64,000 nucleotides of DNA from Lepidodermella squamata. Its lineage: Eukaryota > Animalia > Gastrotricha. The stretch's first letter is position 1. Each line of letters starts with the position of its first letter. The DNA is taken from positions 1,612,001-1,676,000 of the forward strand of contig JBLDXI010000010.1 in the NCBI GenBank assembly GCA_047495785.1, read 5' to 3'. The notes beneath the pieces are model-generated. The model made no database searches. It was not told the DNA's origin and worked only from the letters and a program-made list of their open reading frames with translations. This document shows positions 33,092 through 59,220 of the stretch, piece after piece. The position numbers and the translations under genes were made by a program.

Positions 33092-34203
33092 GTTTAAATA
33101 ATCAAATTTGCAGGGTTAAAAATAATGAGCAAGGAGTGAATAGGGATAAGCGGCAAAGTCACCCCATTAAAGTCGTGCGACATGCGCACTCTTTGAAAAT
33201 TGAGAATGTCAACAACCATTTATCGCTCTCGCCGTAAATGAACTCAATAGGAAACAAAGTATGTAGCGCGCTCTTTTCAGCTCGGCAGCAGAAATTGATG
33301 GCTCTAATTTATAGCGATATTGTGCCAATGGCCGAGCCAATATCTTCTTAACTCTTTAGCTACCATCACGTGTGGTGTTAACACGTATGTATAAACACGT
33401 ATGACTAGAAATTGCTGTAGGCCCCATAGCAATAGTTTTTCGAATATGGCTTTGATCTAAAAACGTGCTCAGTCGTTATCAGCGATGAAGTAAATCGCTT
33501 TCCAAACAATTGCATGTACAACACTCTCTAGGTAGCTGAAAAATGTCAAAAGTATGACATTTTTGACGAGGTTCTACAAAATTTGATGTTCCCGCCATAC
33601 TGCGTGCATATAATTCCAATAAATACTGTTTTTTCAACTGATCACATCTTAATAGGACCCGAGTGAAACAACATTTCTAATCGAAGGACTTGGATCGGAT
33701 GCGAAATAATGTCACAGCAAACCCCGTGGTTAGTCATTCCGTGTTAAGACGAGGTCGTCCTGTAGCTAAAGGGTATTATGGCATGATAGTTATGAATTGC
33801 CGCAAATTCAGGGAAAATTGAAATAATTCAGTTGAAATAATTGTATTTAATATGTATTATATTATGTTTAATATAATATAATATAAACAATAATTAACAT
33901 TTGCAAAGTATGCTCTCTGTCTAAAAGTGCCCAAATGCGAAAGATAAATGAGAAAGAAAGCCACGAGGACTATGTATGATTCACTCCACATGAATTTGGT
34001 TTTGTTCTATTGTCAACACGCACCACCAGTTGTAGCTTTTTCCTAATAAAACAAAAAATCAATATGGCGCCTGCGTAAAGAGAACGAGATTCACTTGACT
34101 GATCGTGGTTTTTTCATTCCATCACTTTTATGAATGAATTTAATTAATTTGCCAAGAATTTTGCTCGATTTATTTGTTTCTATTTTCCAAAAGAAGGCGT
34201 TAT

Positions 34204-35634
34204 ATGGCTAGAGCTTTGAAAAAGTTGTGCTGTTATGAAGACAGCTCAATCTGTCTTTTCAATCAGGAAACCAATTTACTCGGAAATCAGCATCAAATCC
34301 TTCAAGATTTCCTGCCACTGGCCCGCAGCAGCTTGCGAGTTCATGGTATAACCTTGAGCCAATCAAAAGAGCTGAGCAAGCCTGCTGAACCCTGGCATAC
34401 TATTGAATTGTGCCGTTACGACAACGACTATCACAAAGCCTCGAATCGGTATTACGTCAATTTCCAGCTAATCAATCGTCGCGATTCTCATCGTATAGAG
34501 AACCAATTCTACTGCCAACTTGTCGAATTTTTGCATGAAAAATTGCTGGAAACTGGCGGGATCGAGTTGGACGCTGCGACGCATATGCTAATTTGGGGTT
34601 GTGTCGAATCGAATTCCTTTCAAATTCTCAAGGACTTTCTCGACCAACATCCTCGCCTAGCTTTGGATTTGAAAATATGTCACTGCTCTTCCGCGACAAT
34701 GCTGATCCGTTCGGTTGACAAATGCAATTCAGAAATGGTTCAGTTACTTCTGAAACACGGCGTCAGGGCAAGATACGATGAGGCTGAAATTAGGAATGAA
34801 TCATGCCCACTGACGAAATGCCTCCACCGGTTCTACGATTTCACCGGGTTTCGCAGTGAAGTACTCGACCTAGATCCAGATGGCCATTGGCGCGAAAAGG
34901 GGCGGAGCTTAGCAGAAATCTTGATTGCGCTCATTGCTCATCGTGATTACGACCTGTTCAAGGCTGAGAAGATCAAAAGCAGCCAGAGTGAAAGTATCAC
35001 TATATCGGGTGCGTTATCTCTGATTTCTCTAGTCGCACTTTTCGGCGGAGAGTTGGCTCTGAAGTTAATCGATGCGCCAGCAACGAGAAAATTCCTCTCT
35101 GAGAATGAATTCGCGTTCTCGCCTCTGAAATTCGCATTCGTCCACTGCATCCTAGCGTATGAACATGCTGATGAGATTGGGAATGAAGTTCGATTCTTGC
35201 CAGTTGAAGATATAGCCAGAATATTCCGTTTTTCGATTGTACCCCTCCTAAGAGCTGGAAGCCGATGTCATAATCTGTACAAGTTTCGCAAATTGCCGTA
35301 TCTACTGCGGCATTCTGATCGAGGTCGTGAATATGCCGAAAAACTATGGCCAGTCTACGATCGAATCGTCGATTTGGTTGTAGAATCCAGCCCTAACTGC
35401 GCTCTCGTTCGGCCGAGAGAAATGCAAGGCATGGCTGTATTGTCTAACGACGAGATGTACTACTTTGACGCAATTCGAGAACGATATCCAAGGTCCCTGC
35501 AGCACCAATGCCGGCATGTCATCACCAGAAACTTGCCTTACGGACTTGAATCTAGGAATAACGCAATCCATTCACTGAAATTACCTGCAACTCTGGAACA
35601 TTATCTTACGTTCCCAGAATTTGAAGTGAAATGA
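34204..35634 (+). CDS. SOCS-box protein with degenerate ankyrin-like helices, intronless
   Basis: C-terminal PRSLQHQCRHVI...IHSLKLPATLEHYL SOCS box, ankyrin-like EMVQLLLKHG. Confidence 0.8.
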   Translation: MARALKKLCCYEDSSICLFNQETNLLGNQHQILQDFLPLARSSLRVHGITLSQSKELSKPAEPWHTIELCRYDNDYHKASNRYYVNFQLINRRDSHRIENQFYCQLVEFLHEKLLETGGIELDAATHMLIWGCVESNSFQILKDFLDQHPRLALDLKICHCSSATMLIRSVDKCNSEMVQLLLKHGVRARYDEAEIRNESCPLTKCLHRFYDFTGFRSEVLDLDPDGHWREKGRSLAEILIALIAHRDYDLFKAEKIKSSQSESITISGALSLISLVALFGGELALKLIDAPATRKFLSENEFAFSPLKFAFVHCILAYEHADEIGNEVRFLPVEDIARIFRFSIVPLLRAGSRCHNLYKFRKLPYLLRHSDRGREYAEKLWPVYDRIVDLVVESSPNCALVRPREMQGMAVLSNDEMYYFDAIRERYPRSLQHQCRHVITRNLPYGLESRNNAIHSLKLPATLEHYLTFPEFEVK

Positions 35635-35916: not shown

Positions 35917-36576
35917 ATGTCACTTGCTCACGCTTGTTTCCTCATTTTAAGCGCTTTGGCCGCGTATACAATTGCTCAATTTGGACAATGTGCCGGGCCT
36001 TACGGGCAATGTGGCGGCGAGGGTTATTTCGGCCCGCGATGCTGCCCAGATAACTTCGTCTGCACGAAATACAGCGAATACAATTTCCGCTGCGTTCCAG
36101 CTCCACTAGCGAATGGCACCTGGCCTAAATGCCCGTTGAAGTACATCTGCTGCCAGAATTTCCCGCCAGTCTACAACGGGAATAACAACCTACGTTGCTG
36201 CCAGGATTATGGACCTTACGACCCCAGTATTACAAACTGCACTTCCCAAACTGATCAAGTTGTTAAGAGGCCAAGCGCTGAGAGAATCATCGCAAACTGC
36301 CCTCCATTTTACCTCTGCTGCCCTGGCTTGAATCCGGTGCCAAATTTGAGGGGTAACTTGTACTGCTGCCCTGGTATAGGCTACTACGACCCAACCTATC
36401 AAATCTGCCCGCCCGAGACAAATCTGAGGCCGTTGGTTTTCGGAAACTGCCCGATTGGATGGATTTGCTGCGAGGATAACGAACCGGTCCGCAACCACAA
36501 CTCAACCCTCCAGTGCTGCCCGGGCGTTGGCGCCTACAACCCTATTACTACAAGCTGTTCGAGCCTCATCAACTGA
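35917..36576 (+). CDS. Secreted CBM1 (fungal-type cellulose-binding) domain + 3 six-Cys repeats
   Basis: Signal peptide, CAGPYGQCGGEGYFGPRCCPDNFVCTKYSEYNFRC, then three C-x5-CC-x14-CC-x12-C modules. Confidence 0.85.
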   Translation: MSLAHACFLILSALAAYTIAQFGQCAGPYGQCGGEGYFGPRCCPDNFVCTKYSEYNFRCVPAPLANGTWPKCPLKYICCQNFPPVYNGNNNLRCCQDYGPYDPSITNCTSQTDQVVKRPSAERIIANCPPFYLCCPGLNPVPNLRGNLYCCPGIGYYDPTYQICPPETNLRPLVFGNCPIGWICCEDNEPVRNHNSTLQCCPGVGAYNPITTSCSSLIN

Positions 36577-36699
36577 AAAAGACGAAATCCGATATTTAAT
36601 TGACTTCTTCCAAAGTATCTAGGATTAAAATTTCATTTAATAAAACTGAAGTGAGCCATTTTACTGTTTGTTCCAAATGCAAAAATATGAGGTCTTAGA

Positions 36700-37685
36700 T
36701 CACTCGAGGTTATAACTTATAATGGGAAAGTTCAACACATCAGCCATTGAAGGTCTGGTATTAGGATTGCGATCTAGCAGTCGTTGTTCAATGAGACTCC
36801 GATACTCTTGCCCGATCATCCTACCTATTGGCTCAATAGGCTCCCTGAAATCAGCAAAATAGGTGTGATTCTTTGTAAGATCTTTTTACAACTTACACGC
36901 ATATTGCTTTATACATAACGCCGATGTTTGATGCATAAGTAAACTGAGCGAAAAATACTGATATATCAAACATTTCTTGACTTGAAGTAGCTTACTGGAA
37001 GTCGTAGATTTGCTATTTCATATAAGACAATGCCGAATGCCCAAACGTCTGTCTTGTTGTTGTAGTGGCTATCACCACTCACTTCTTTCCAGAGCTCCGG
37101 CGCCATATGAGTCGGAGTGCCTATAAGACCATCATGCTCTAAGTCTCGATCACAACTCTCGCTGGATTTCTTGGCAAAACCGAACCCACCAAGCTTCAAT
37201 CGTCCAGATTCGTCGAGGAATAGGTGTTCGGATTTAATGTCGCGATGAACAAATCCTTGCATGTGGATATGGTTCAGGGCTAACGCGAACTGGCAAGCCC
37301 ATCGAATTTGATCCTGCTCGGGGAAGGCATTGCCGTGGCGAGATTTGATGAGTTTTTTCATTGAGCCGTTGAATAGATCCATTATTATATGATTTACAGA
37401 GCCAATCGCGAAATAACCATGCATCCCAACTATGTATTTGTGCTGGACTTGAGACATTAGATAGCTCTGTGATGGAAACATGTTTAGTAATCATGTGGCT
37501 TTAGAGCAAAATACCTCTTGCTTTGCCAGCCGTTGCATGTCCTCGTCGATTTCCTCGAAATCAACCCTTTTCATGGCGTATAACTGGCCGTCAGCATTTC
37601 CGCGAATTTTGAAAACATTGCCGAAAGCTCCTCGGCCAATGCGCTGCTCGACTGTGAACTGATCTGGCGAAGTAAATTTTGCCAT
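36700..37685 (-). CDS. NEK-like Ser/Thr kinase domain protein, probable pseudokinase, 4 exons
   Basis: Exons 37685-37515, 37466-36996, 36943-36897, 36844-36700. GRGAFG, YAMK, HRDIKSEH, GFG in place of DFG, GTPTHMAPE, DVWAFG, RP. Confidence 0.88.
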
Positions 37686-38178
37686 TCTTGGGTAAACCAC
37701 TCGTAGTAACTGAGCGGCGGTAATTGTTGTTTTAAGATGTCGCCATTTGCGATCGATGCACAGTCTAGATGTGGCACAATCAAAACAATGGCTGGGCACA
37801 CATCAGTCCAAACGTTGCTCATGAATTATGCAAAAAATTCTTGCGCTGTTGGGCTGCTGGCATGAATCGATAATTATCGGGATTTTGCGGCAACCGCGAG
37901 GGCAAATTTTTGCGCTCAAACTTGAATTCATAATTCTACCAGTTGACGTCAAACCGAGGTGAATCCCACCCCAGTATTACCTAAATCGCACTTTCCCGTT
38001 TTCAGGGTTCGCAACCTAAATTTCACTTTTTTCTGATTTAATGACAATGACAGATGTCAAGAGGCTTTTGCGCCATATATGCCAGCAATTTATAAATTAA
38101 ATCGGATTATCAAACAAATCTCTCACTCGTTTTTTCATTCGTGGCAAATTTGAATTTTCTGCATCTAATCTGTCTAAA

Positions 38179-39078
38179 ATGCAAGCCTTTTTAGCTCTAA
38201 GTCTTATTTTTGCCTGTTTCTTACATAGTTCCTTGGCTCAATGTGCTTCCTTTTACAGCCAATGTGGTGGAATCGGTTACACAGGCTATCAGTGCTGCCC
38301 AGAGGGCTATACCTGTATGAAAAACGATGATTACTACTCGGCTTGTCGACCGACTGGAAGCTCAGCCAATTGCACACTCGGCTATATCTGTTGCCCCGGC
38401 TTCGCGCCGAAATACAACGCGAATTTCAACCTACAGTGCTGCCCAGGCTACGGACCCTACGACACATCGACGCAGAATTGCCAGGGTATTACCGACGTGA
38501 TCAACCCGCAAATTTGCCCTGCTGGTTTCTTGTGCTGCGAGAATTACATCCCTATCGGGAATCCGAAGAAGGAGTTACGGTGTTGCAAAGGCTATGGTCC
38601 CTTCAACCCGAATATTGTGAGCTGCGATGAACTTCTGGATAGCTTGGCTAGGAGGTCCAGGAATGGATCTGGAGCCTACAGTTGCCCTTGGTACTACCTT
38701 TGCTGCCCGGGTTTCACTCCAGTTGAAAACTATCGAAGCGTCCATGCCTGCTGCCCAGGGCAAGGACCATACGACACATCGACTATGAACTGCTTATTCG
38801 ACGCGAAGAACAACACTTACGTTCTGAGGTAAGTAAAACAGCTACCTGGAACTTTCTAATTCTAAAATGTCCTTATTTAATCCAGCTATGTTTCGAATAC
38901 GATAGCGAACGTGCTGGGTAAGAATTCGAGCTGGACTTTCTCATGCCCTGATGGCAAACTATGCTGCGACAATTTCCCGCCGATTTCGAACCCGAACAGC
39001 ACTTTGAAGTGTTGCCCGGGCGCTGGTCCTTACAATCCAGGCTGGCAGCAATGTCCTCCCTCTGTTGGAAGACGATGA
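38179..39078 (+). CDS. Secreted CBM1 + 4 six-Cys repeats, 2 exons, C-terminal GRR
   Basis: CASFYSQCGGIGYTGYQCCPEGYTCMKNDDYYSAC. Intron 38829-38885 adds a 4th repeat (CPDGKLCC...CCPGAGPYNPGWQQCPPSVGRR*) that the ORF track misses. Confidence 0.85.
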
Positions 39079-39144: not shown

Positions 39145-40579
39145 TCATCTCCTATTTTGCATAACATCCATGTAATAAGCATCGATAATGACGATGATAA
39201 TGAAGAAGACCGAAAAAGCGCATACATCAACGAGTCTAACATTTGAAATTTCTAATGACTTGTAAATCTGACGCGTTTTTTCTCCCCATTTCGTTCCAGC
39301 AATCACAGTTGCAATCAGCACGTAAATTGTTATGCCAACACAAATCGCAAGTTGCGCCTCGATCAGCACTATCAAATAGATCCGCTTCGAAGTTCGCGGG
39401 ATTAAGCTGAATACGAGGCTGAGTAATACAGAGAACGCCAGATCGACAGTTACGCAGTAAGTTGGCCGATCTGGATGTTCTGGGTTCATGATGAAAGCGC
39501 AAAGTTGAAGGGCTATCATGATATACATGGGTAGAAACACGTTTCCGATGAAGTAGAAATGCTTCCGATCAAAGGCCATCTTAAGACTTATCCTATGGTA
39601 GACTTCCTGATCTTCCCTCTTCTGCGTCTTCTCGGAGTAGTAGAAAGCTTCAGGCACCGGGCTCCAAATATCAGCGTCATCGAGTAGCAGGGACATATTG
39701 TCGACCTCGTATTTAACTTTAGAAGAGAATCTAACCGCCCAAGTTGGCCAGCTGGGCTCGATATCAATACTGCACTCCATCCTATCGTAAGGGAAATGCT
39801 CAACGGCGAAACCATCGCAGTTAGTATCGATCAGGCGCGTTTCGTAACAGCTGCCATAGACGGGTTTCTCAGAGGCTCCTAGATAGACGATCGTTTCCTG
39901 GAAGAGGTTGATTTTGGAGGCTGCGTTAACATGGCGAATAACAGGTCGCCATGAGGTCGATGTATTGCTGACAAGCACTACCGCAAGAGGAGCCTCGTCT
40001 TCACCGTAGTACTCTCTGAAGTTCATAGTTTGGCATCCAGGCCCCGAGTAATCGTCTTCAAATTTAGGAAAAGGCCATGTAACTTCGATCTGAGCGAAAA
40101 CCGACAGGCTACAGTATTCACAAACAGGTGAGCAAAAATTGTTTTCAAATGTAAATATACCTTTGCCCTTTATCGTTAATCTCAGCGACTCGATACATGA
40201 TAAGAGTGAATTCGAGATCGATAGGAAAAGGATATGGATAAGGTGCTGGTCGAAGACTCATGAGCTCAATAATCAAATCTGTACTTCTAGCCAATGAGCA
40301 GAAATCGTAAAGGAAGTCTCGATTGACCATCTCAGCAAAGTCGGTAACATCTAACCAGCTTGATTTCGTTTGATTAGAGGAGAGCTCAGTTGGATTTTCC
40401 TCCGTCGAACTGAGAGTTTCATTTGAGGCCGGTTCGAGCTGAGTGGAATTGTCATCCAACGAGTTGTCAGTAATTTCAGTTTCATTGGAAGGAAATTCAG
40501 GCAGGGTAGAATTATCATCCAGCGAACTGGCTATACCGAGTACGGAGGCGATTAAAATAAAGCTATGCAAAGTATTCAT
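39145..40579 (-). CDS. Cys-loop channel subunit B1, 2 exons
   Basis: Intron 40160-40109. CDGFAVEHFPYDRMEC, M2 PDRPTYCVTVDL. Confidence 0.92.
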
Positions 40580-40756
40580 ATTCGTCCTGGAAAAAGCTAT
40601 TACATTCTTGAGAAACTAGCAGCCACTTGTGTATATACACATGTGTGTTTGGCCTTTTACGATTCTTTGTATTACGAGCATGAGTGTAATGTGTCAGTAC
40701 TGGAGATGAGAATGTGCCGGTGCTAGGTCGTAAGGCTTTTCAGCATCCAACATGTT

Positions 40757-42097
40757 TTATTCATAATATTCAGTCATTTTGACCATGTAATAAGCATCAA
40801 CTACAACGATAACAGTCACAAAAATAGCTGTTGCTATAAAGTCGACAATTCGAACGTTTTGAACCTTCACCAATCCGAAAAGCCGGCGCTTTGTCTGGCC
40901 CCATTCTGTTTCCCAGATAACCCCAGCCACCAGCGCGTAAATTGTGATGAGGACGCAAATTATCACCTGAGCTTCAACCAACACAACGATGTAAATAGTT
41001 TTTGACGTTCGCGGGATCAGTCCGAAGACTAAGCTTAACAAAACAGCGAATGATAGATCGACAGTGATGCAGTACAAAGGCCGGTCAGCGTATTCAGGGC
41101 TCATGATCAAAGCAGATAGTTGCAAGATGATCATTATAATCATCGGGACGAAGATGTTTCCGATAAAGTAGAAATAACGGCGTTTGAACTGCATTTTACA
41201 GCTGAATCGCGTGAATTTTTCCTTATTTTTGGTTATGAAATTAATTTCGCCATAAAATGACTCGTTAACCGCTTCCCAGACGTCTGAATCTCCCAAAAGT
41301 TGGCTGAAATCTTCAACTTCGCAGATTGAAGTGTTCGTTAACGATACCATGTTGCCTTGGTATGACGGCTCAATGTCTATGGAACAAGACATGGTGTCAA
41401 ACGGGAAGAAGGTTACATCAAATCCGTCGCAGTTCGTCTCGATAAGCCGGGCTTGTTCGACCAACCCTGTGACTGGTGTGATATGAGCTCCGATAGTAAT
41501 TTCATCAGCTTTGATAAGGTCGAATTCCCGAACAGCATTCACGTGGTACATCCTAGGCTGCCATGATACAGTGCCGTTTGCAACCAGGAAAACCTGTTGG
41601 TTTTCATCGTCGAAAAATTCAGTGCTATTCAGACTGCCGCATCCATGTATCGGATAACTCCAGTAGACCACAATATTTGTGTAAACAGAAAGACTCTGCG
41701 AAATGTCGTTGATTTCTGTGATACTGTTTAGCTTCAAATCGATTGTTGCATTGATGGGGAAATCGATGATTCGCCTTTTGAGTATCAGCTCGAGTACAAG
41801 CTCTCGCGAAGCAACAAGAGGGCACCTGTCCTCAGAATACCACTTGTAAAGCCTTTCCGAATACGTCAAGTGAGTATCGCTTTCTCCGGAAAAAGCTTGA
41901 TCATAATCTGATTGGTCGGTCCCAAGTTCCGTCAAGGTTAAATTTACATCGGCTTCAGTCCAGCTTGCCCTCGTATCAGCTTTTGTCCCGGTAGCATTTG
42001 CATCAGATTCCGTCGAGATTGCATTCGTTCCAGCATCACCTGTAGCATTGGCTGAGATTAAAAAAGGTATGAAAAGTAGTAAAACTGTGCTATTCAT
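40757..42097 (-). CDS. Cys-loop channel subunit B2, intronless
   Basis: 446-aa ORF with signal peptide, CDGFDVTFFPFDTMSC and four TMs. Confidence 0.94.
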   Translation of the reverse strand: MNSTVLLLFIPFLISANATGDAGTNAISTESDANATGTKADTRASWTEADVNLTLTELGTDQSDYDQAFSGESDTHLTYSERLYKWYSEDRCPLVASRELVLELILKRRIIDFPINATIDLKLNSITEINDISQSLSVYTNIVVYWSYPIHGCGSLNSTEFFDDENQQVFLVANGTVSWQPRMYHVNAVREFDLIKADEITIGAHITPVTGLVEQARLIETNCDGFDVTFFPFDTMSCSIDIEPSYQGNMVSLTNTSICEVEDFSQLLGDSDVWEAVNESFYGEINFITKNKEKFTRFSCKMQFKRRYFYFIGNIFVPMIIMIILQLSALIMSPEYADRPLYCITVDLSFAVLLSLVFGLIPRTSKTIYIVVLVEAQVIICVLITIYALVAGVIWETEWGQTKRRLFGLVKVQNVRIVDFIATAIFVTVIVVVDAYYMVKMTEYYE

Positions 42098-47035: not shown

Positions 47036-48304
47036 TCATAGCTCACTCCTTTCGGTCATTTTAACCATATAAATTGTGTCAACAATAATGACAACTATAA
47101 CAAAAATGGTTCCCGCGATCCAGTCGATAATTCTAACATTGGATACCTTCAAGCACTTGTAAATCCGATGCTTCGCCTGGCCCCACTCCGTATCCCAGAT
47201 GACTCCGCTGATGAGCACATAGATCGTGATGATGACGCAAATTATCACTTGAGCTTCGACCAACACGACAATGTAAACTATTTTCGAAGTTCGAGGAATT
47301 AGTCCGAAAACCATGGATAACAGAACAGCAAATGCTAAATCAACTGTGATGCAGTACAAAGGCCGATCAGGGTGTTCAGGGGTCATTATCAAGGCGGCTA
47401 GTTGTAGGACGATCATCAAAATCATTGGGACGAAGATGTTCCCGATAAAGTAGAAATAACGTCGTTTGAACCCCATTTTACAGCTGAATCGGTTGTAATT
47501 TTCCATATCTCTGGTAACATTTGTCACTTCGCCAATAAAAGAGCCATTAATAGCTTCCCAAACATCAGAATCTCCAAGAAGCTGATCGAAGTCATTCGGA
47601 TCGCAAGAAATGTCCTGAATCTTGATTAATTGACTAGGGTACGAAGGCTCGACATCTATCGAACAATCCATGACGTCGAATGGGAAGAACTGAACATTGA
47701 AACCGTCGCAGTTTGTTTCTATAACTCGCGTCTCGGTTGAGTAGGCAAACACTGGGTCTGAATAAGCTGCAATGGAGATCTCAGTGTCAGTAACAAGGTC
47801 AACATCACTGACGGCATTGACATGGAATAGACGAGGTTGCCAAGATCGGGTGGCATTGCCTTTTAGCCAGATCGAAGCATCTGAATCGTTGTACAATTTT
47901 GTTACATTAACGAAAGAACATCCATTCGCCGGGAAAGTCCACGCAGTCTTGATTGTGGAAAATACGGACAAAGTCTGTTGTAGATCACTGATTTCAAGTA
48001 TGTTGAACAGAGTGAGGTACAAGTCGACTGCGATGGGCAGATCGGTGTTTTGCCGCCGTTTGAGAATCATCTCTAGGACAAGTTCTCTCGAAGCAGCAAG
48101 TGGGCATTTCTTATCGACAAACCAGTCCCGCAATAGCTCGGCATTTGTCTTCCGATCTGGGTTAGTCCCATTGAAGATTTCGTTGTATTCCGAGTTATCT
48201 TCCACCTCAATCTCAGACGACAGCGTTGAAGTAGTGATATTTGAAGCTGAACAGCATCCACTCGCTACAACAAGCAATAGAAGCAACGTAGAAATAAGAG
48301 CCAT
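47036..48304 (-). CDS. Cys-loop channel subunit B3, intronless
   Basis: Signal peptide MALISTLLLLLVV at 48304. CDGFNVQFFPFDVMDC. Closest to B2. Confidence 0.93.
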   Translation of the reverse strand: MALISTLLLLLVVASGCCSASNITTSTLSSEIEVEDNSEYNEIFNGTNPDRKTNAELLRDWFVDKKCPLAASRELVLEMILKRRQNTDLPIAVDLYLTLFNILEISDLQQTLSVFSTIKTAWTFPANGCSFVNVTKLYNDSDASIWLKGNATRSWQPRLFHVNAVSDVDLVTDTEISIAAYSDPVFAYSTETRVIETNCDGFNVQFFPFDVMDCSIDVEPSYPSQLIKIQDISCDPNDFDQLLGDSDVWEAINGSFIGEVTNVTRDMENYNRFSCKMGFKRRYFYFIGNIFVPMILMIVLQLAALIMTPEHPDRPLYCITVDLAFAVLLSMVFGLIPRTSKIVYIVVLVEAQVIICVIITIYVLISGVIWDTEWGQAKHRIYKCLKVSNVRIIDWIAGTIFVIVVIIVDTIYMVKMTERSEL

Positions 48305-48426
48305 TATAATATAAGAAAATCTACGCAGTTCTAACAAGAGAAAAAGCACTAAACCTAGTTGGTAATAGTGCAAACATGTTAACTCATTCAACAGCCTTTT
48401 ACGCTCCGAAATTCCACATTTATTCA

Positions 48427-49748
48427 TCACTTTCCATACATTTTAGCTGAAAAGTACACATCTACAATTATAACAATGATGAAAAAGATGGCAAATGCTA
48501 TAATGTCTAGTATCCTCACATACCGCAACTCGAGTGATTTGTAGACCTGATGCGTTTTTTGAGACCACTTGGATTCTGTCAGAGTCCCAGCAAACAATGT
48601 ATACAAAGTTATAGCGACGCAAATGATGAGTTGAGCTTCAATCAGCGAAACTACATAGACTTGTTTAGAACTTCTTGGCAGATAGGTGAAAACTAAGATC
48701 AAGTTTACAGAGAAAGCCAGGTCGAGAATAACGCAGAAGGTGGGGCGGTGGGGATGCTCTGGGTTCATAATCAAAGAACTGAGCTGTAGGACTATCATTA
48801 AATAGGTTGGTAGAAAAATGTTGCCGATGTAATAGAAATATCGTCGTTGGAATCCCATTTTGAACGTCAAATGGCTATTTGTCATTCTATAAGCCGCTGT
48901 CACTCGAACTACAGTACTGACATTTGCCGTGAACTGGTCTGGCACCGGCTCCCAGACATCTGAATCGCCGAGAAGATTTGCGAAATCCGCAACTCCATAT
49001 TTGATTTCATCGGAAAATATGACAGATCCCTCGCCCCAACTGCCCTCCTCAAGTTCGATTGTGCATTCCATTGCATCGAACGGGAAGTACTCGATGTGAA
49101 AACCATCGCAATTTGTTTTGATCAGCCGTGTTTCTTCAATTTGGCCGCGGATATGCGTCGGATCATCAATGTGATAGGTGAGTTTCTTTGTTGGGATGAA
49201 TTCTAATTTATCAACAGCGTTTCGATGGTCGATTTTCGGTTTCCAGCTCATCGATGTATTCCCATTAAGAGCGAGTGAAGCATTCGGTGAATCTCGAAAA
49301 AGAACCAATTTGAATGCGCTGCCACAGTCGAAATTAGGATAAGTCCAAGTTGCGGAGGCTTTGGCGAAAACTGTTAATCTAATGTATTTCATGTTTACTA
49401 TGGATTTGAGGTAATTCAGGGCACAAACGTTTGTCCGATGTCGTCGATTTCAGCCACACTGAGAAGCATCAGCTGAACAGAAACTTCAATCGGCAAGACG
49501 TCACTTCGGTTTCGCAGCTGTAGCTCTAGAATGAGTTCGTCACTAGACGCTAGTGGGCAGTCAGTATTGAAGAAAAAGTCGTCGAAGAGTGGCATGAATT
49601 TCGGGGATGCCATTAAGGCTTTGATATACTCCGGCGGAAGAATGAAGCGAGAAGGAAGATCATCGGCTTGTTCTTCAGGAGAAACAGTCGAATTTATTGC
49701 GCTGATACTGATTAGAACAACCGAGAAGAAAACTAACAGAACATTCAT
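48427..49748 (-). CDS. Cys-loop channel subunit B4, 2 exons
   Basis: Intron 49428-49379. CDGFHIEYFPFDAMEC, M2 PHRPTFCVILDL. Confidence 0.92.
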
Positions 49749-57330: not shown

Positions 57331-57768
57331 TTTATGACTGTCTATTCTCATTCTATCATTTTCTACGTTATCTATTCTTAGAATGTATCTATTTTCTTAA
57401 TTGAGCGCTGAATTTCCTAGTAGATCTAGACTTATTTTTGAACTGGGGAAATTGTTCATATTGAATGCTGTACGACAGTTTCGAGCCTCAACATCTGATT
57501 TCAATCGAAAATAGGAGTAACCAAAACTGAAATGAAGAAGTAAAAGTCAGCGCTAATAATAAAATCCAGTAAAATCCAAAACTTTTGAACCAGTTTTCTC
57601 TCCATCTTCAATCTCAGACAAATGCCTGCTATTGAATAAGAAATAAAATGATCGATAAGAAAAAAGCTGTGAGATGCTGCTAATTGCTAATCGATAGCTA
57701 ACCACTTTATTATGCTAAAATCTAATAAGACAAATCTGTTCGTCATCAATTTGATTTATTCCGTTGTC

Positions 57769-59220
57769 ATGGAGCAAAACAGAAGGCTTATCTGCGATGA
57801 TGTCAATTGTCCTATGAGATCCACCGAATTCAGGTACAGCCAGTTGGGTCTTGCTAAGCATGCCATATCAGAGATTAACGACCAACTCCGACTGCCTCCT
57901 GGAACGATTCAAGTCTACTCAAACCAAGCATCAATGCCGTCCTCTCGGCTATCATTTTGCATGAGACTATGCGGGCCAGATTATCGATATCATCACATCG
58001 AATCATCTGATAACGATAAACTATCAGCCTCAGCCATTGTTATTGTTTCTTCGATACCTATTCAGTTTGTTTCATCCAATGCGAACCCGACTTCGTTCTT
58101 TTACGACACAGTGACCACTCTTTTCGGTAACTGGTCCAGGGGTGCTAGCTCTGAATTCACCCCTAAAACTCATCTGTTGCTATGGTGCGCCTTGGAGAGT
58201 AAAAACATATCGAAACTAAGAGGTTACCTAGCATCAAATCGGGGTGTGATTCCTAGTTGTACGTTGAGTCTCATGTTGACTTCAGCTGTTTTGTCCCTCT
58301 ACGAAGAAGGGGTAGCTGTTCTGCTGGAACATAGAGCCAGAGCTCGGTGGCAAGGATCTGATGATGACTTTGAAGCTTACCCTCTTTTCAATTGCCTCAA
58401 CTTGTTCCATCGATACTTCGGGTTTGATAATGAGGCTTTAGTTCTTGAAGATCATTTGCAACTCAGAACTCTAGCTAACATCCTCTACCTTCTTTTGTCT
58501 CATTTGCCAAGAGCTTTTGAACCAGAAGAAGTTACAGAGCTAGAAAGATACACCATTATAGGGTGCGTTAATCAGCTGGCTCTGGTAGCTACTTGTCTAG
58601 GAGAGCAAACATCAGATTTGCTGGATATTCCTTTGATTTGTTATGTATGCAGAAACTCTCCTTCACCACTTCTCTTCGCGTTATCGTATTGCATACGCTT
58701 GAAACGGGGATCAATACTACGGCCTGATTTGTACCATCGTCAAATCGCGCATATCAAATCAGTGTTGACTCACGCAGTTGCACCCCTCATTAAATCCGGC
58801 CTCCGGACAAACGCATCGATTTTCAATCTCGACTGTCTTAGATTCTTGTGTGAGAGCCCGTTCTCACCTATTATCAATCTACTCCTACTGGCTCAAAAGG
58901 ACTCTTCAGTATTGAGTGTTTCATCCATCTCGCAATCTGAACAGCAGCCAAATATTGACCAATTAATAATGCCTTTCCCGAGATTGGCCTTCTACAGCCA
59001 AAATCATGGCAATAACTTTGACCCAATTATTGATCAAATTATCGCAAGATGCGGTAGAATCCGAAAACTGCAAGCATCTTGTCGGAATGTAATCCTCGAC
59101 TGCCTTGAGTTAGGAATCAAGAACAGGTCTGAGTCGATAATGAAGCTCGATCTACCTTTGCCTTTACTCAACTATCTGAACGCACCAGAGGTTGATTTAT
59201 TGTGTAAAATATGCAAATAA
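57769..59220 (+). CDS. SOCS-box protein, paralog of 34204-35634, intronless
   Basis: IRKLQASCRNVI...LDLPLPLLNYL SOCS box, shared blocks THxLxW..ES, LLxHxxRAR, SPLxFA...CI. Start at 57712 or 57769. Confidence 0.78.
   Translation: MEQNRRLICDDVNCPMRSTEFRYSQLGLAKHAISEINDQLRLPPGTIQVYSNQASMPSSRLSFCMRLCGPDYRYHHIESSDNDKLSASAIVIVSSIPIQFVSSNANPTSFFYDTVTTLFGNWSRGASSEFTPKTHLLLWCALESKNISKLRGYLASNRGVIPSCTLSLMLTSAVLSLYEEGVAVLLEHRARARWQGSDDDFEAYPLFNCLNLFHRYFGFDNEALVLEDHLQLRTLANILYLLLSHLPRAFEPEEVTELERYTIIGCVNQLALVATCLGEQTSDLLDIPLICYVCRNSPSPLLFALSYCIRLKRGSILRPDLYHRQIAHIKSVLTHAVAPLIKSGLRTNASIFNLDCLRFLCESPFSPIINLLLLAQKDSSVLSVSSISQSEQQPNIDQLIMPFPRLAFYSQNHGNNFDPIIDQIIARCGRIRKLQASCRNVILDCLELGIKNRSESIMKLDLPLPLLNYLNAPEVDLLCKICK

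Follow-up and report, generated by a model that had tools for sequence, protein, structure and literature searches.

Two genes joining a CBM1 domain to tandem six-cysteine modules in the gastrotrich Lepidodermella squamata

The carbohydrate-binding module of family 1 (CBM1; Pfam CBM_1, PF00734; CAZy CBM family 1) occurs almost exclusively in fungi and oomycetes (PMC8518581). Fungal proteins account for 2523 of the 2702 CBM1 sequences in Pfam, and a few come from algae (PMC5962083). CBM1s from outside the fungi bind cellulose as well as chitin (PMC5962083), and CBEL, a non-enzymatic CBM1 protein, is required for adhesion to cellulosic substrates (PMC3532174). Here, we analyzed two genes, termed P1 (35917-36576) and P2 (38179-39078), that lie in a stretch of 64,000 nucleotides on contig JBLDXI010000010.1 of the gastrotrich Lepidodermella squamata. 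This whole stretch is referred to as the window, and coordinates without a prefix are positions in it. Both genes encode a CBM1 followed by tandem copies of a cysteine-rich module that is shared with genes of an animal galaxin-like family, an architecture that is previously unreported. An earlier examination of the same DNA, based on the letters only (the sequence-only reading), had already pointed to the two CBM1s and had described this domain as mainly fungal with oomycete and algal examples, in agreement with the literature cited above. We found no report of a CBM1 in a gastrotrich in the searchable literature. Papers on a snail and on Nematostella that seemed to mention an animal CBM1 turned out to refer to other CBM families.

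Structure of the two genes and their proteins

The features of P1 and P2 are listed below.

35917-36576, + strand: P1 gene, an open reading frame of one exon and 219 aa, with a TGA stop at 36574-36576
35917-35979, + strand: predicted signal peptide of P1, residues 1-21 (hydrophobic N-terminus)
35989-36093, + strand: CBM1 of P1, C25 to C59 (Pfam CBM_1, E 1.4e-8, 34.9 bits)
36130-36240, 36298-36408 and 36448-36558, + strand: modules 1-3 of P1 (C-x5-CC-x13-CC-x12-C; 57-69 bits in the own-genome search with the module profile)
36639-36644, + strand: AATAAA 3' of the P1 stop
38179-38828, + strand: exon 1 of P2, with signal peptide, CBM1 and modules 1-3 (open reading frame, Pfam, module profile)
38179-38238, + strand: predicted signal peptide of P2 (hydrophobic, signal-like N-terminus)
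38242-38346, + strand: CBM1 of P2, C22 to C56 (Pfam CBM_1, E 1.2e-8, 35.2 bits)
38371-38481, 38515-38625 and 38683-38793, + strand: modules 1-3 of P2 (module profile)
38829-38885, + strand: intron of P2, 57 bp, GTAAGT...CCAG, phase 2
38886-39078, + strand: exon 2 of P2, with a linker and module 4 (38944-39054; open frame, six Cys, 66.9 bits), ending in ...VGRR
39076-39078, + strand: stop of P2
39124-39129, + strand: AATAAA of P2

In both proteins, the CBM1 comes directly after the signal-like N-terminus and scores above the Pfam gathering cut-off of 20.6 bits. The six-frame search of the whole genome (see below) returned the same two places with 38.8 and 39.2 bits. The cysteines follow the framework C-x6-C-x9-CC-x5-C-x9-C and are located at positions 25, 32, 42, 43, 49, and 59 in P1 and at positions 22, 29, 39, 40, 46, and 56 in P2. 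All three aromatic residues of the binding face are retained in P2 (Y26, Y52, and Y53), which reads D-Y-Y-S-A-C at the end of the domain, whereas P1 (E-Y-N-F-R-C) keeps Y29 and Y55 and carries Asn56 in place of the second Tyr of the pair. In addition, an Arg replaces the conserved Gln that precedes the last cysteine of the P1 domain. An AlphaFold2 model of whole P1, calculated without an alignment, placed a helix at residues 4-22 with low confidence (predicted local distance difference test score, pLDDT, of 44). Pfam searches at E values up to 1, extended to 10 in the case of the repeat regions, did not reveal a catalytic domain in P1 or P2. Several N-glycosylation motifs are part of the design, which includes neither a membrane anchor nor an enzyme.

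The two exons of P2 were run separately in the domain searches. Removal of the intron restores the reading frame and adds a fourth intact module, resulting in a protein of ∼281 aa. The splice between 38828 and 38886, read from the genomic sequence, is a predicted one. The 57-bp intron is similar in size to the 48-52-bp introns of a neighboring kinase gene that are confirmed by RNA. At position 38850, within this intron, 1 bp is missing from one of the DNA haplotypes.

The region following the CBM1 consists of three (P1) or four (P2) copies of a module of 37 residues and six cysteines, C-x5-CC-x13-CC-x12-C, with the consensus CPxGYICCxxxxPVxNxxxxLRCCPGxGPYDPxxxxCP. The seven copies are identical in length and share the invariant residues C3, C9, C10, C25, C26, G30, and C39; the two CC pairs are invariant in all 17 aligned module copies. 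When the modules of P1 and P2 are compared in their order, modules 1 are 56% identical, modules 2 34%, and modules 3 39%. This alignment suggests that the array of three modules may be older than the duplication that gave rise to the two genes. An AlphaFold2 model of one module based on 17 sequences reached a pLDDT of 82. It had no Foldseek match in the PDB, and the best VIA Z score (2.2) belonged to an unrelated zinc domain. Likewise, comparison of the module with PDB sequences yielded no match at E values up to 10, a word-index search with P1 no relative, and the ESM Atlas no usable match for the repeat region. Granulin had been a candidate, since the module starts with CPxGxxCC and contains CC pairs, and was rejected after searches of Pfam (E up to 10) and of PDB sequences and folds gave no match.

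Most of what the sequence-only reading had stated on these genes is borne out by our results: two paralogs that open with a signal-like N-terminus and a six-Cys CBM1, as confirmed with the PF00734 profile; no catalytic domain; YN in P1 at the place where P2 keeps YY; and a 57-bp intron of host style (GT..AG) in P2. It had not mentioned, however, that the remaining part of both proteins is ordered into three or four modules.

Large parts of both genes are transcribed. This was shown with a run from 2015 that belongs to a separate study (X2) and is probably RNA; since its contigs leave the intergenic region 37738-38079 uncovered, X2 behaves as RNA. It covers the stretch 36142-36597 of P1 and P2 from ∼38150 to 38823. 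A single contig (38232-38495) joins the CBM1 and module 1 of P2 without any difference to the genome, and the three X2 variants listed within P2 (38766, 38769, and 38778) fall on third codon positions.

Two further observations concern the sequence of these genes. The linker between modules 1 and 2 of P1 (36241-36297) contains a dibasic KR motif, and the linker between modules 2 and 3 of P2 (38626-38682) a furin-like RRSR motif. Both are possible convertase sites, but their positions are not aligned between P1 and P2. Furthermore, the stretch 38466-38646 of P2 exists in two forms that are ∼5% apart (9 of 181 bases), both of which are present in a DNA run from 2024 as well as in the 2015 run. 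Likewise, positions 36899-37524 of the neighboring kinase gene have two forms ∼5% apart in both runs. This indicates either high heterozygosity or two diverged copies that were collapsed in the assembly.

Relatives of the two parts and genomic neighborhood

We searched the genome with a profile of the module and found at least seven further genes that carry it, once each and at the C-terminal end. Of the 14 strong module copies in the genome, seven are located in P1 and P2. Regions with other module-bearing genes are the following.

C38:478-481 kb, C1:3.979-3.984 Mb and C1:4.226-4.231 Mb: other module-bearing genes of the same genome

The upstream parts of these galaxin-like genes contain CC-G-x3-Y-x5-C repeats that match the Pfam family Galaxin_repeat (PF24748); the gene at L053:7445-8479 reaches 47 bits through these repeats (cut-off 28). 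An exhaustive search of 1.84 billion representative proteins with the 14-copy profile returned four matches, namely three real relatives and one spurious repeat protein. In all three relatives (P0121, P0122, and P0124), the module occurs once, at the C-terminal end, and a CBM1 is absent. P0121 lies above the Galaxin_repeat cut-off and P0122 just below; P0124 has similar CC units by eye and no Pfam match. P0121 and P0122 are encoded on metagenome contigs together with animal genes (Neur_chan_LBD, bicarbonate transporter, CAP, and Sushi), and P0124 stands alone on a contig of 1.1 kb. Judged from these sequences, the module appears to belong to genes of an animal galaxin-like family, and it may itself be a diverged galaxin unit. 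Polybasic C-terminal ends were observed in several family members, that is, in the own-genome paralogs in L051 and in P0121 and P0122.

A six-frame search with PF00734 was performed on the whole assembly (121.23 Mb in 151 contigs). Above the cut-off, the search revealed at least 30 CBM1 modules, which belong to about 11 genes, lie on six contigs, and are all of the six-Cys type. P1 and P2 are one member of this wider CBM1 radiation, the other members of which include the following.

L034:4923-6311 (C19:0.471 Mb) and L033:4583-5989 (C25:1.117 Mb): GH9 cellulases with two to three N-terminal CBM1s (E 2e-84 for the GH9 domain of L034)
L072:2944-5100: CBM1-GH9 gene listed with the two above
L031:4691-6421, L039:786-2624, L039:5446-7950 and L032:3297-5255 (C2:624-641 kb): four neighboring long open frames, each encoding the ligand-binding domain (LBD) of a Cys-loop receptor and a stalk rich in Ser/Thr along with one to eight CBM1s
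L035:4129-5340 (C3:1.454 Mb): two CBM1s, a Thr-rich linker and a C-terminal domain of ∼190 aa without a Pfam match
L036:4807-6865 (C25:0.867 Mb): two CBM1s and a long Thr/Lys/Ala linker, then Cys-rich open frames; no Pfam match
L037 (C19:2.625-2.627 Mb): two short genes with paired CBM1s

One of the four frames on C2 combines eight CBM_1 matches (E 1.8e-77) with Neur_chan_LBD (E 1.2e-10). By eye, the C-terminal domain of L035 is possibly expansin or barwin-like, and the Cys-rich frames of L036 contain C..WG.C...WMQG.C.KTC motifs that are reminiscent of ShK-type domains. Several of the CBM1 genes encode short proteins; in one CBM1 of L037, a cysteine of the CC pair is lost (DC), and the domain reads YN, as in P1. 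Between P1 and P2, the CBM1s share 47% identity. Their identity to all the other CBM1s of this genome is 39-56%, and to those of the GH9 proteins 47-56%. Because they are as near to these as to each other, the donor CBM1 cannot be named. In the ESM Atlas, the P2 domain matched only anonymous CBM1 clusters without taxa, at scores under 0.85.

The window has a GC content of ∼42%, and P1 and P2 lie among spliced animal genes. A SOCS-box gene is located upstream of P1, genes for Cys-loop receptor LBDs downstream (Pfam), and a protein kinase gene that is not a member of the family lies between P1 and P2.

36641-37685, - strand: protein kinase gene (Pfam Pkinase, E 6.5e-32)
1557-2648, 34174-35631, 39145-42097, 47036-48430 and 57712-59217: Cys-loop LBD and SOCS-box genes of the window

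The kinase gene contains three introns of 52, 52, and 48 bp, whose GT..AG joints (36843/36896, 36943/36996, and 37466/37515) are seen spliced in X2. This neighborhood of SOCS-box, spliced kinase and Cys-loop genes supports the linkage to animal genes that the sequence-only reading had assumed. For the protein of the SOCS-box gene adjoining P1, a word-index search revealed no relative. The 3' ends of P1 and of the kinase gene converge at 36574-36702. A loose poly-T end at 36641 in X2 marks the poly(A) end of the kinase transcript; since this site (∼36641) falls within the AATAAA of P1, the 3' untranslated regions of P1 and the kinase gene must abut or overlap.

Proposed function and origin

P1 and P2 each combine a domain of foreign type with a module of an animal family and are thus chimeric. 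Given that the CBM1 has many partners in this genome and that the module is shared within a family, the two genes are most simply explained by domain shuffling and not by a transfer event. Most simply, then, CBM1 and module were fused within this genome, and the resulting gene was duplicated in tandem. No gene with CBM1 plus module was found outside this genome in the JGI metagenomes, in IMG/VR, in the word index, or by the exhaustive search. The scan of the JGI metagenomes for P1 and P2 returned 12 loci, all of which were CBM1-only matches on ordinary fungal or protist-looking genes, and the scan of IMG/VR returned no P1/P2-like genes.

We propose that P1 and P2 are secreted, non-catalytic, two-part tethers or bridges to cellulose or chitin that arose by fusion inside the genome and subsequent duplication, and we assign this reading a probability of about 0.5. 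In this model, a resident CBM1 would have been fused with multiplied copies of the C-terminal module of the galaxin-like family before the gene was duplicated. The N-terminal six-Cys CBM1 would dock on a crystalline beta-1,4 polysaccharide, that is, on cellulose and possibly chitin, and the three or four disulfide-rich modules could serve as a multivalent arm for protein binding or cross-linking. P1 and P2 would thereby tether or bridge what the animal itself secretes (mucus, adhesive, or the matrix of egg or cuticle) to surfaces or particles of cellulose. Secretion, ligand, bridging role, and fusion within the genome are all inferred, whereas the domain content, the chimeric architecture, the linkage to animal genes, the transcription of large gene parts, and the rarity of the module are shown. 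We favor an anchor or bridge because the design, with a signal peptide, one docking module, several disulfide-rich modules, and no enzyme, resembles that of CBEL. As its binding face is weakened, P1 may by now recognize a different ligand or bind with reduced affinity.

Several points weigh against this proposal. The anchor role is drawn from likeness of design, and neither the sequence nor the fold of the module points to a relative in the PDB. Its relation to galaxin repeats is also not significant: the repeat region of P1 does not match PF24748 at E values up to 10, that of P2 reaches 21.1 bits (E 3e-4) and thus stays below the cut-off of 28, and hhalign aligned only the second half of the module (A3; CC-G-x3-Y-x5-C) with the canonical galaxin unit (A4), at an E value of 0.094 and a probability of 0.6%. 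Short of one Tyr of the binding face and of the conserved Gln, P1 may bind weakly or recognize something else. The X2 contigs leave the CBM1 region of P1 and exon 2 of P2 uncovered, and none of them shows the splice junction of P2. Finally, the GC content at third codon positions (GC3) is 0.54-0.59 in P1 and P2, compared to 0.43-0.53 in neighboring genes, which we tentatively attribute to their content of Cys, Gly, and Pro or to their expression level.

Alternatively, P1 and P2 could be immune or antimicrobial lectins. The CBM1 would then be directed at the walls, made of chitin or cellulose, of parasitic fungi or oomycetes or of microbes that sit on the body surface, and the modules would act as effectors or be released as small disulfide-rich peptides. 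We regard this role as unlikely. The squid galaxin-like protein EsGal1 has been described as antimicrobial (PMC7853314), chitin binding is possible for CBM1s (PMC5962083), and the KR and RRSR linkers, together with the polybasic ends of the paralogs, could be cleaved by convertases. But the basic motifs do not correspond between the two proteins and most linkers do not contain any, and the link of the module to galaxin repeats is not significant by hhalign.

A digestive role seems rather unlikely. In this case, P1 and P2 would be secreted into the gut together with the CBM1-GH9 cellulases, and would coat or loosen algal or detrital cellulose or aggregate food. Such cellulases, with their two to three N-terminal CBM1s, are indeed encoded in the same genome, and isolated CBM1s are reported to raise cellulase action in vitro (PMC9309510). 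However, the three or four attached modules of matrix type would remain unexplained.

The origin of the CBM1 domain itself is another matter. For one of the CBM1-GH9 genes, the closest catalytic domains are not those of animals but belong to environmental proteins (58-59% identity); named animal GH9s are 46-50% identical. One of these environmental GH9s is encoded on a dense, virus-like contig, most genes of which have no Pfam match. A contig in IMG/VR that is labeled as a giant-virus metagenome-assembled genome encodes a GH9 (56% identity) with a C-terminal six-Cys CBM1 that is interrupted by one in-frame TGA. These likenesses, which do not give the direction of a transfer, make a horizontal origin of the CBM1 domain plausible. 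The domain of 35 residues is not placeable by phylogeny; bootstraps under 20% are reported for CBM1 (PMC5962083). The sequence-only reading had proposed a horizontally acquired domain that was put to a new use. The horizontal part of this claim is plausible as stated, but P1 and P2 do not represent a lone acquired domain in view of the many other CBM1 genes of the genome.

A more far-reaching scenario, which we consider doubtful, would connect these findings. A gastrotrich ancestor could have captured a CBM1, perhaps together with a GH9, from a pool of giant viruses or protists and spread it onto animal-specific scaffolds, namely ion-channel subunits, mucins, and modules of the galaxin family. 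P1 and P2 would then be the glue of a bioadhesive or food-capture matrix with a specific grip on plant and algal cellulose, and the module of 37 residues would represent a new, disulfide-rich fold that only this lineage has.

Vertical inheritance of a CBM1 that is old in animals, without any horizontal step, is improbable: the domain is almost exclusively known from fungi and oomycetes with a few algae (PMC8518581; PMC5962083), and the related animal metagenome contigs do not contain a CBM1 motif in the 46 kb examined. A direct transfer of the whole genes from a fungal, protist, or viral source, or an artefact of the assembly through contamination or amplification chimeras, is very unlikely, since the amplified DNA and the cleaning by best-hit filtering of the probable source assembly (PMC11660948) and the slightly raised GC3 stand against a kinase gene with RNA-confirmed introns between P1 and P2, the SOCS-box and Cys-loop flanks, an independent 2015 run from another study that holds both genes at 95-100% identity, a non-CBM1 part whose family also occurs on contigs alongside animal genes, an intron of host size in P2, and the absence of a similar gene in IMG/VR and the JGI metagenomes.

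In P1 and P2, a domain regarded as fungal and oomycete occurs in an animal genome and is expressed. This foreign-type CBM1 was recombined with an animal extracellular module and not merely added to a transferred enzyme, so that P1 and P2 clearly exemplify how the domain shuffling of an animal can take in a domain of foreign type. Along with the cellulases and channel subunits that bear CBM1s elsewhere in the genome, they suggest a broad role of cellulose recognition in the life of this animal. The 37-residue module, nearly absent from public protein space and without a structural relative, represents a small unexplored fold.

Comparison with known systems

The six-Cys CBM1 of P1 and P2, with its extra N-terminal Cys, the CC pair, and the QCGG core, follows the framework of the Cel6A (CBH II)-type CBM1 of fungal cellulases. 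Unlike CBM1s of the Cel6A type, those of P1 and P2 come without a catalytic domain and without a Ser/Thr linker, and P1 carries the Asn and Arg changes mentioned above. The CBM1-GH9 and CBM1-mucin-Cys-loop proteins of the same genome have the same six-Cys CBM1 (39-56% identity), and the first CBM1 of the GH9 proteins is also located directly after the signal peptide. Every other CBM1 protein of the genome has a Ser/Thr-rich linker after its CBM1s, which is absent from P1 and P2.

CBEL, the cellulose-binding elicitor lectin of Phytophthora parasitica, and further CBM1-PAN/Apple proteins from oomycetes are secreted and non-enzymatic, as predicted for P1 and P2, and combine CBM1 with disulfide-rich binding modules. 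They differ in having two CBM1-PAN units instead of one CBM1 with three to four modules, and in belonging to an oomycete instead of an animal. P1 and P2 have no PAN/Apple match in Pfam at E values up to 1, and the likeness to CBEL is an analogy of design only. For CBEL, a function in the attachment to cellulosic substrates and in the organization of the wall is documented (PMC3532174).

Galaxins and galaxin-like proteins, secreted proteins known from the coral skeletal matrix and from squid (EsGal1; PF24748), share with P1 and P2, which are predicted to be secreted as well, the tandem units with fixed positions of the CC pairs. The module of P1 and P2 has two CC pairs plus two single cysteines in its 37 residues. 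In the literature consulted for this comparison, no galaxin carries a CBM, in contrast to P1 and P2.

Finally, the CBM1 proteins of the coccolithophore Emiliania huxleyi bind cellulose and chitin (PMC5962083). They differ from P1 and P2 in their algal host and their architectures; like P1 and P2, they belong to a non-fungal lineage and stand in no obvious cellulolytic context.

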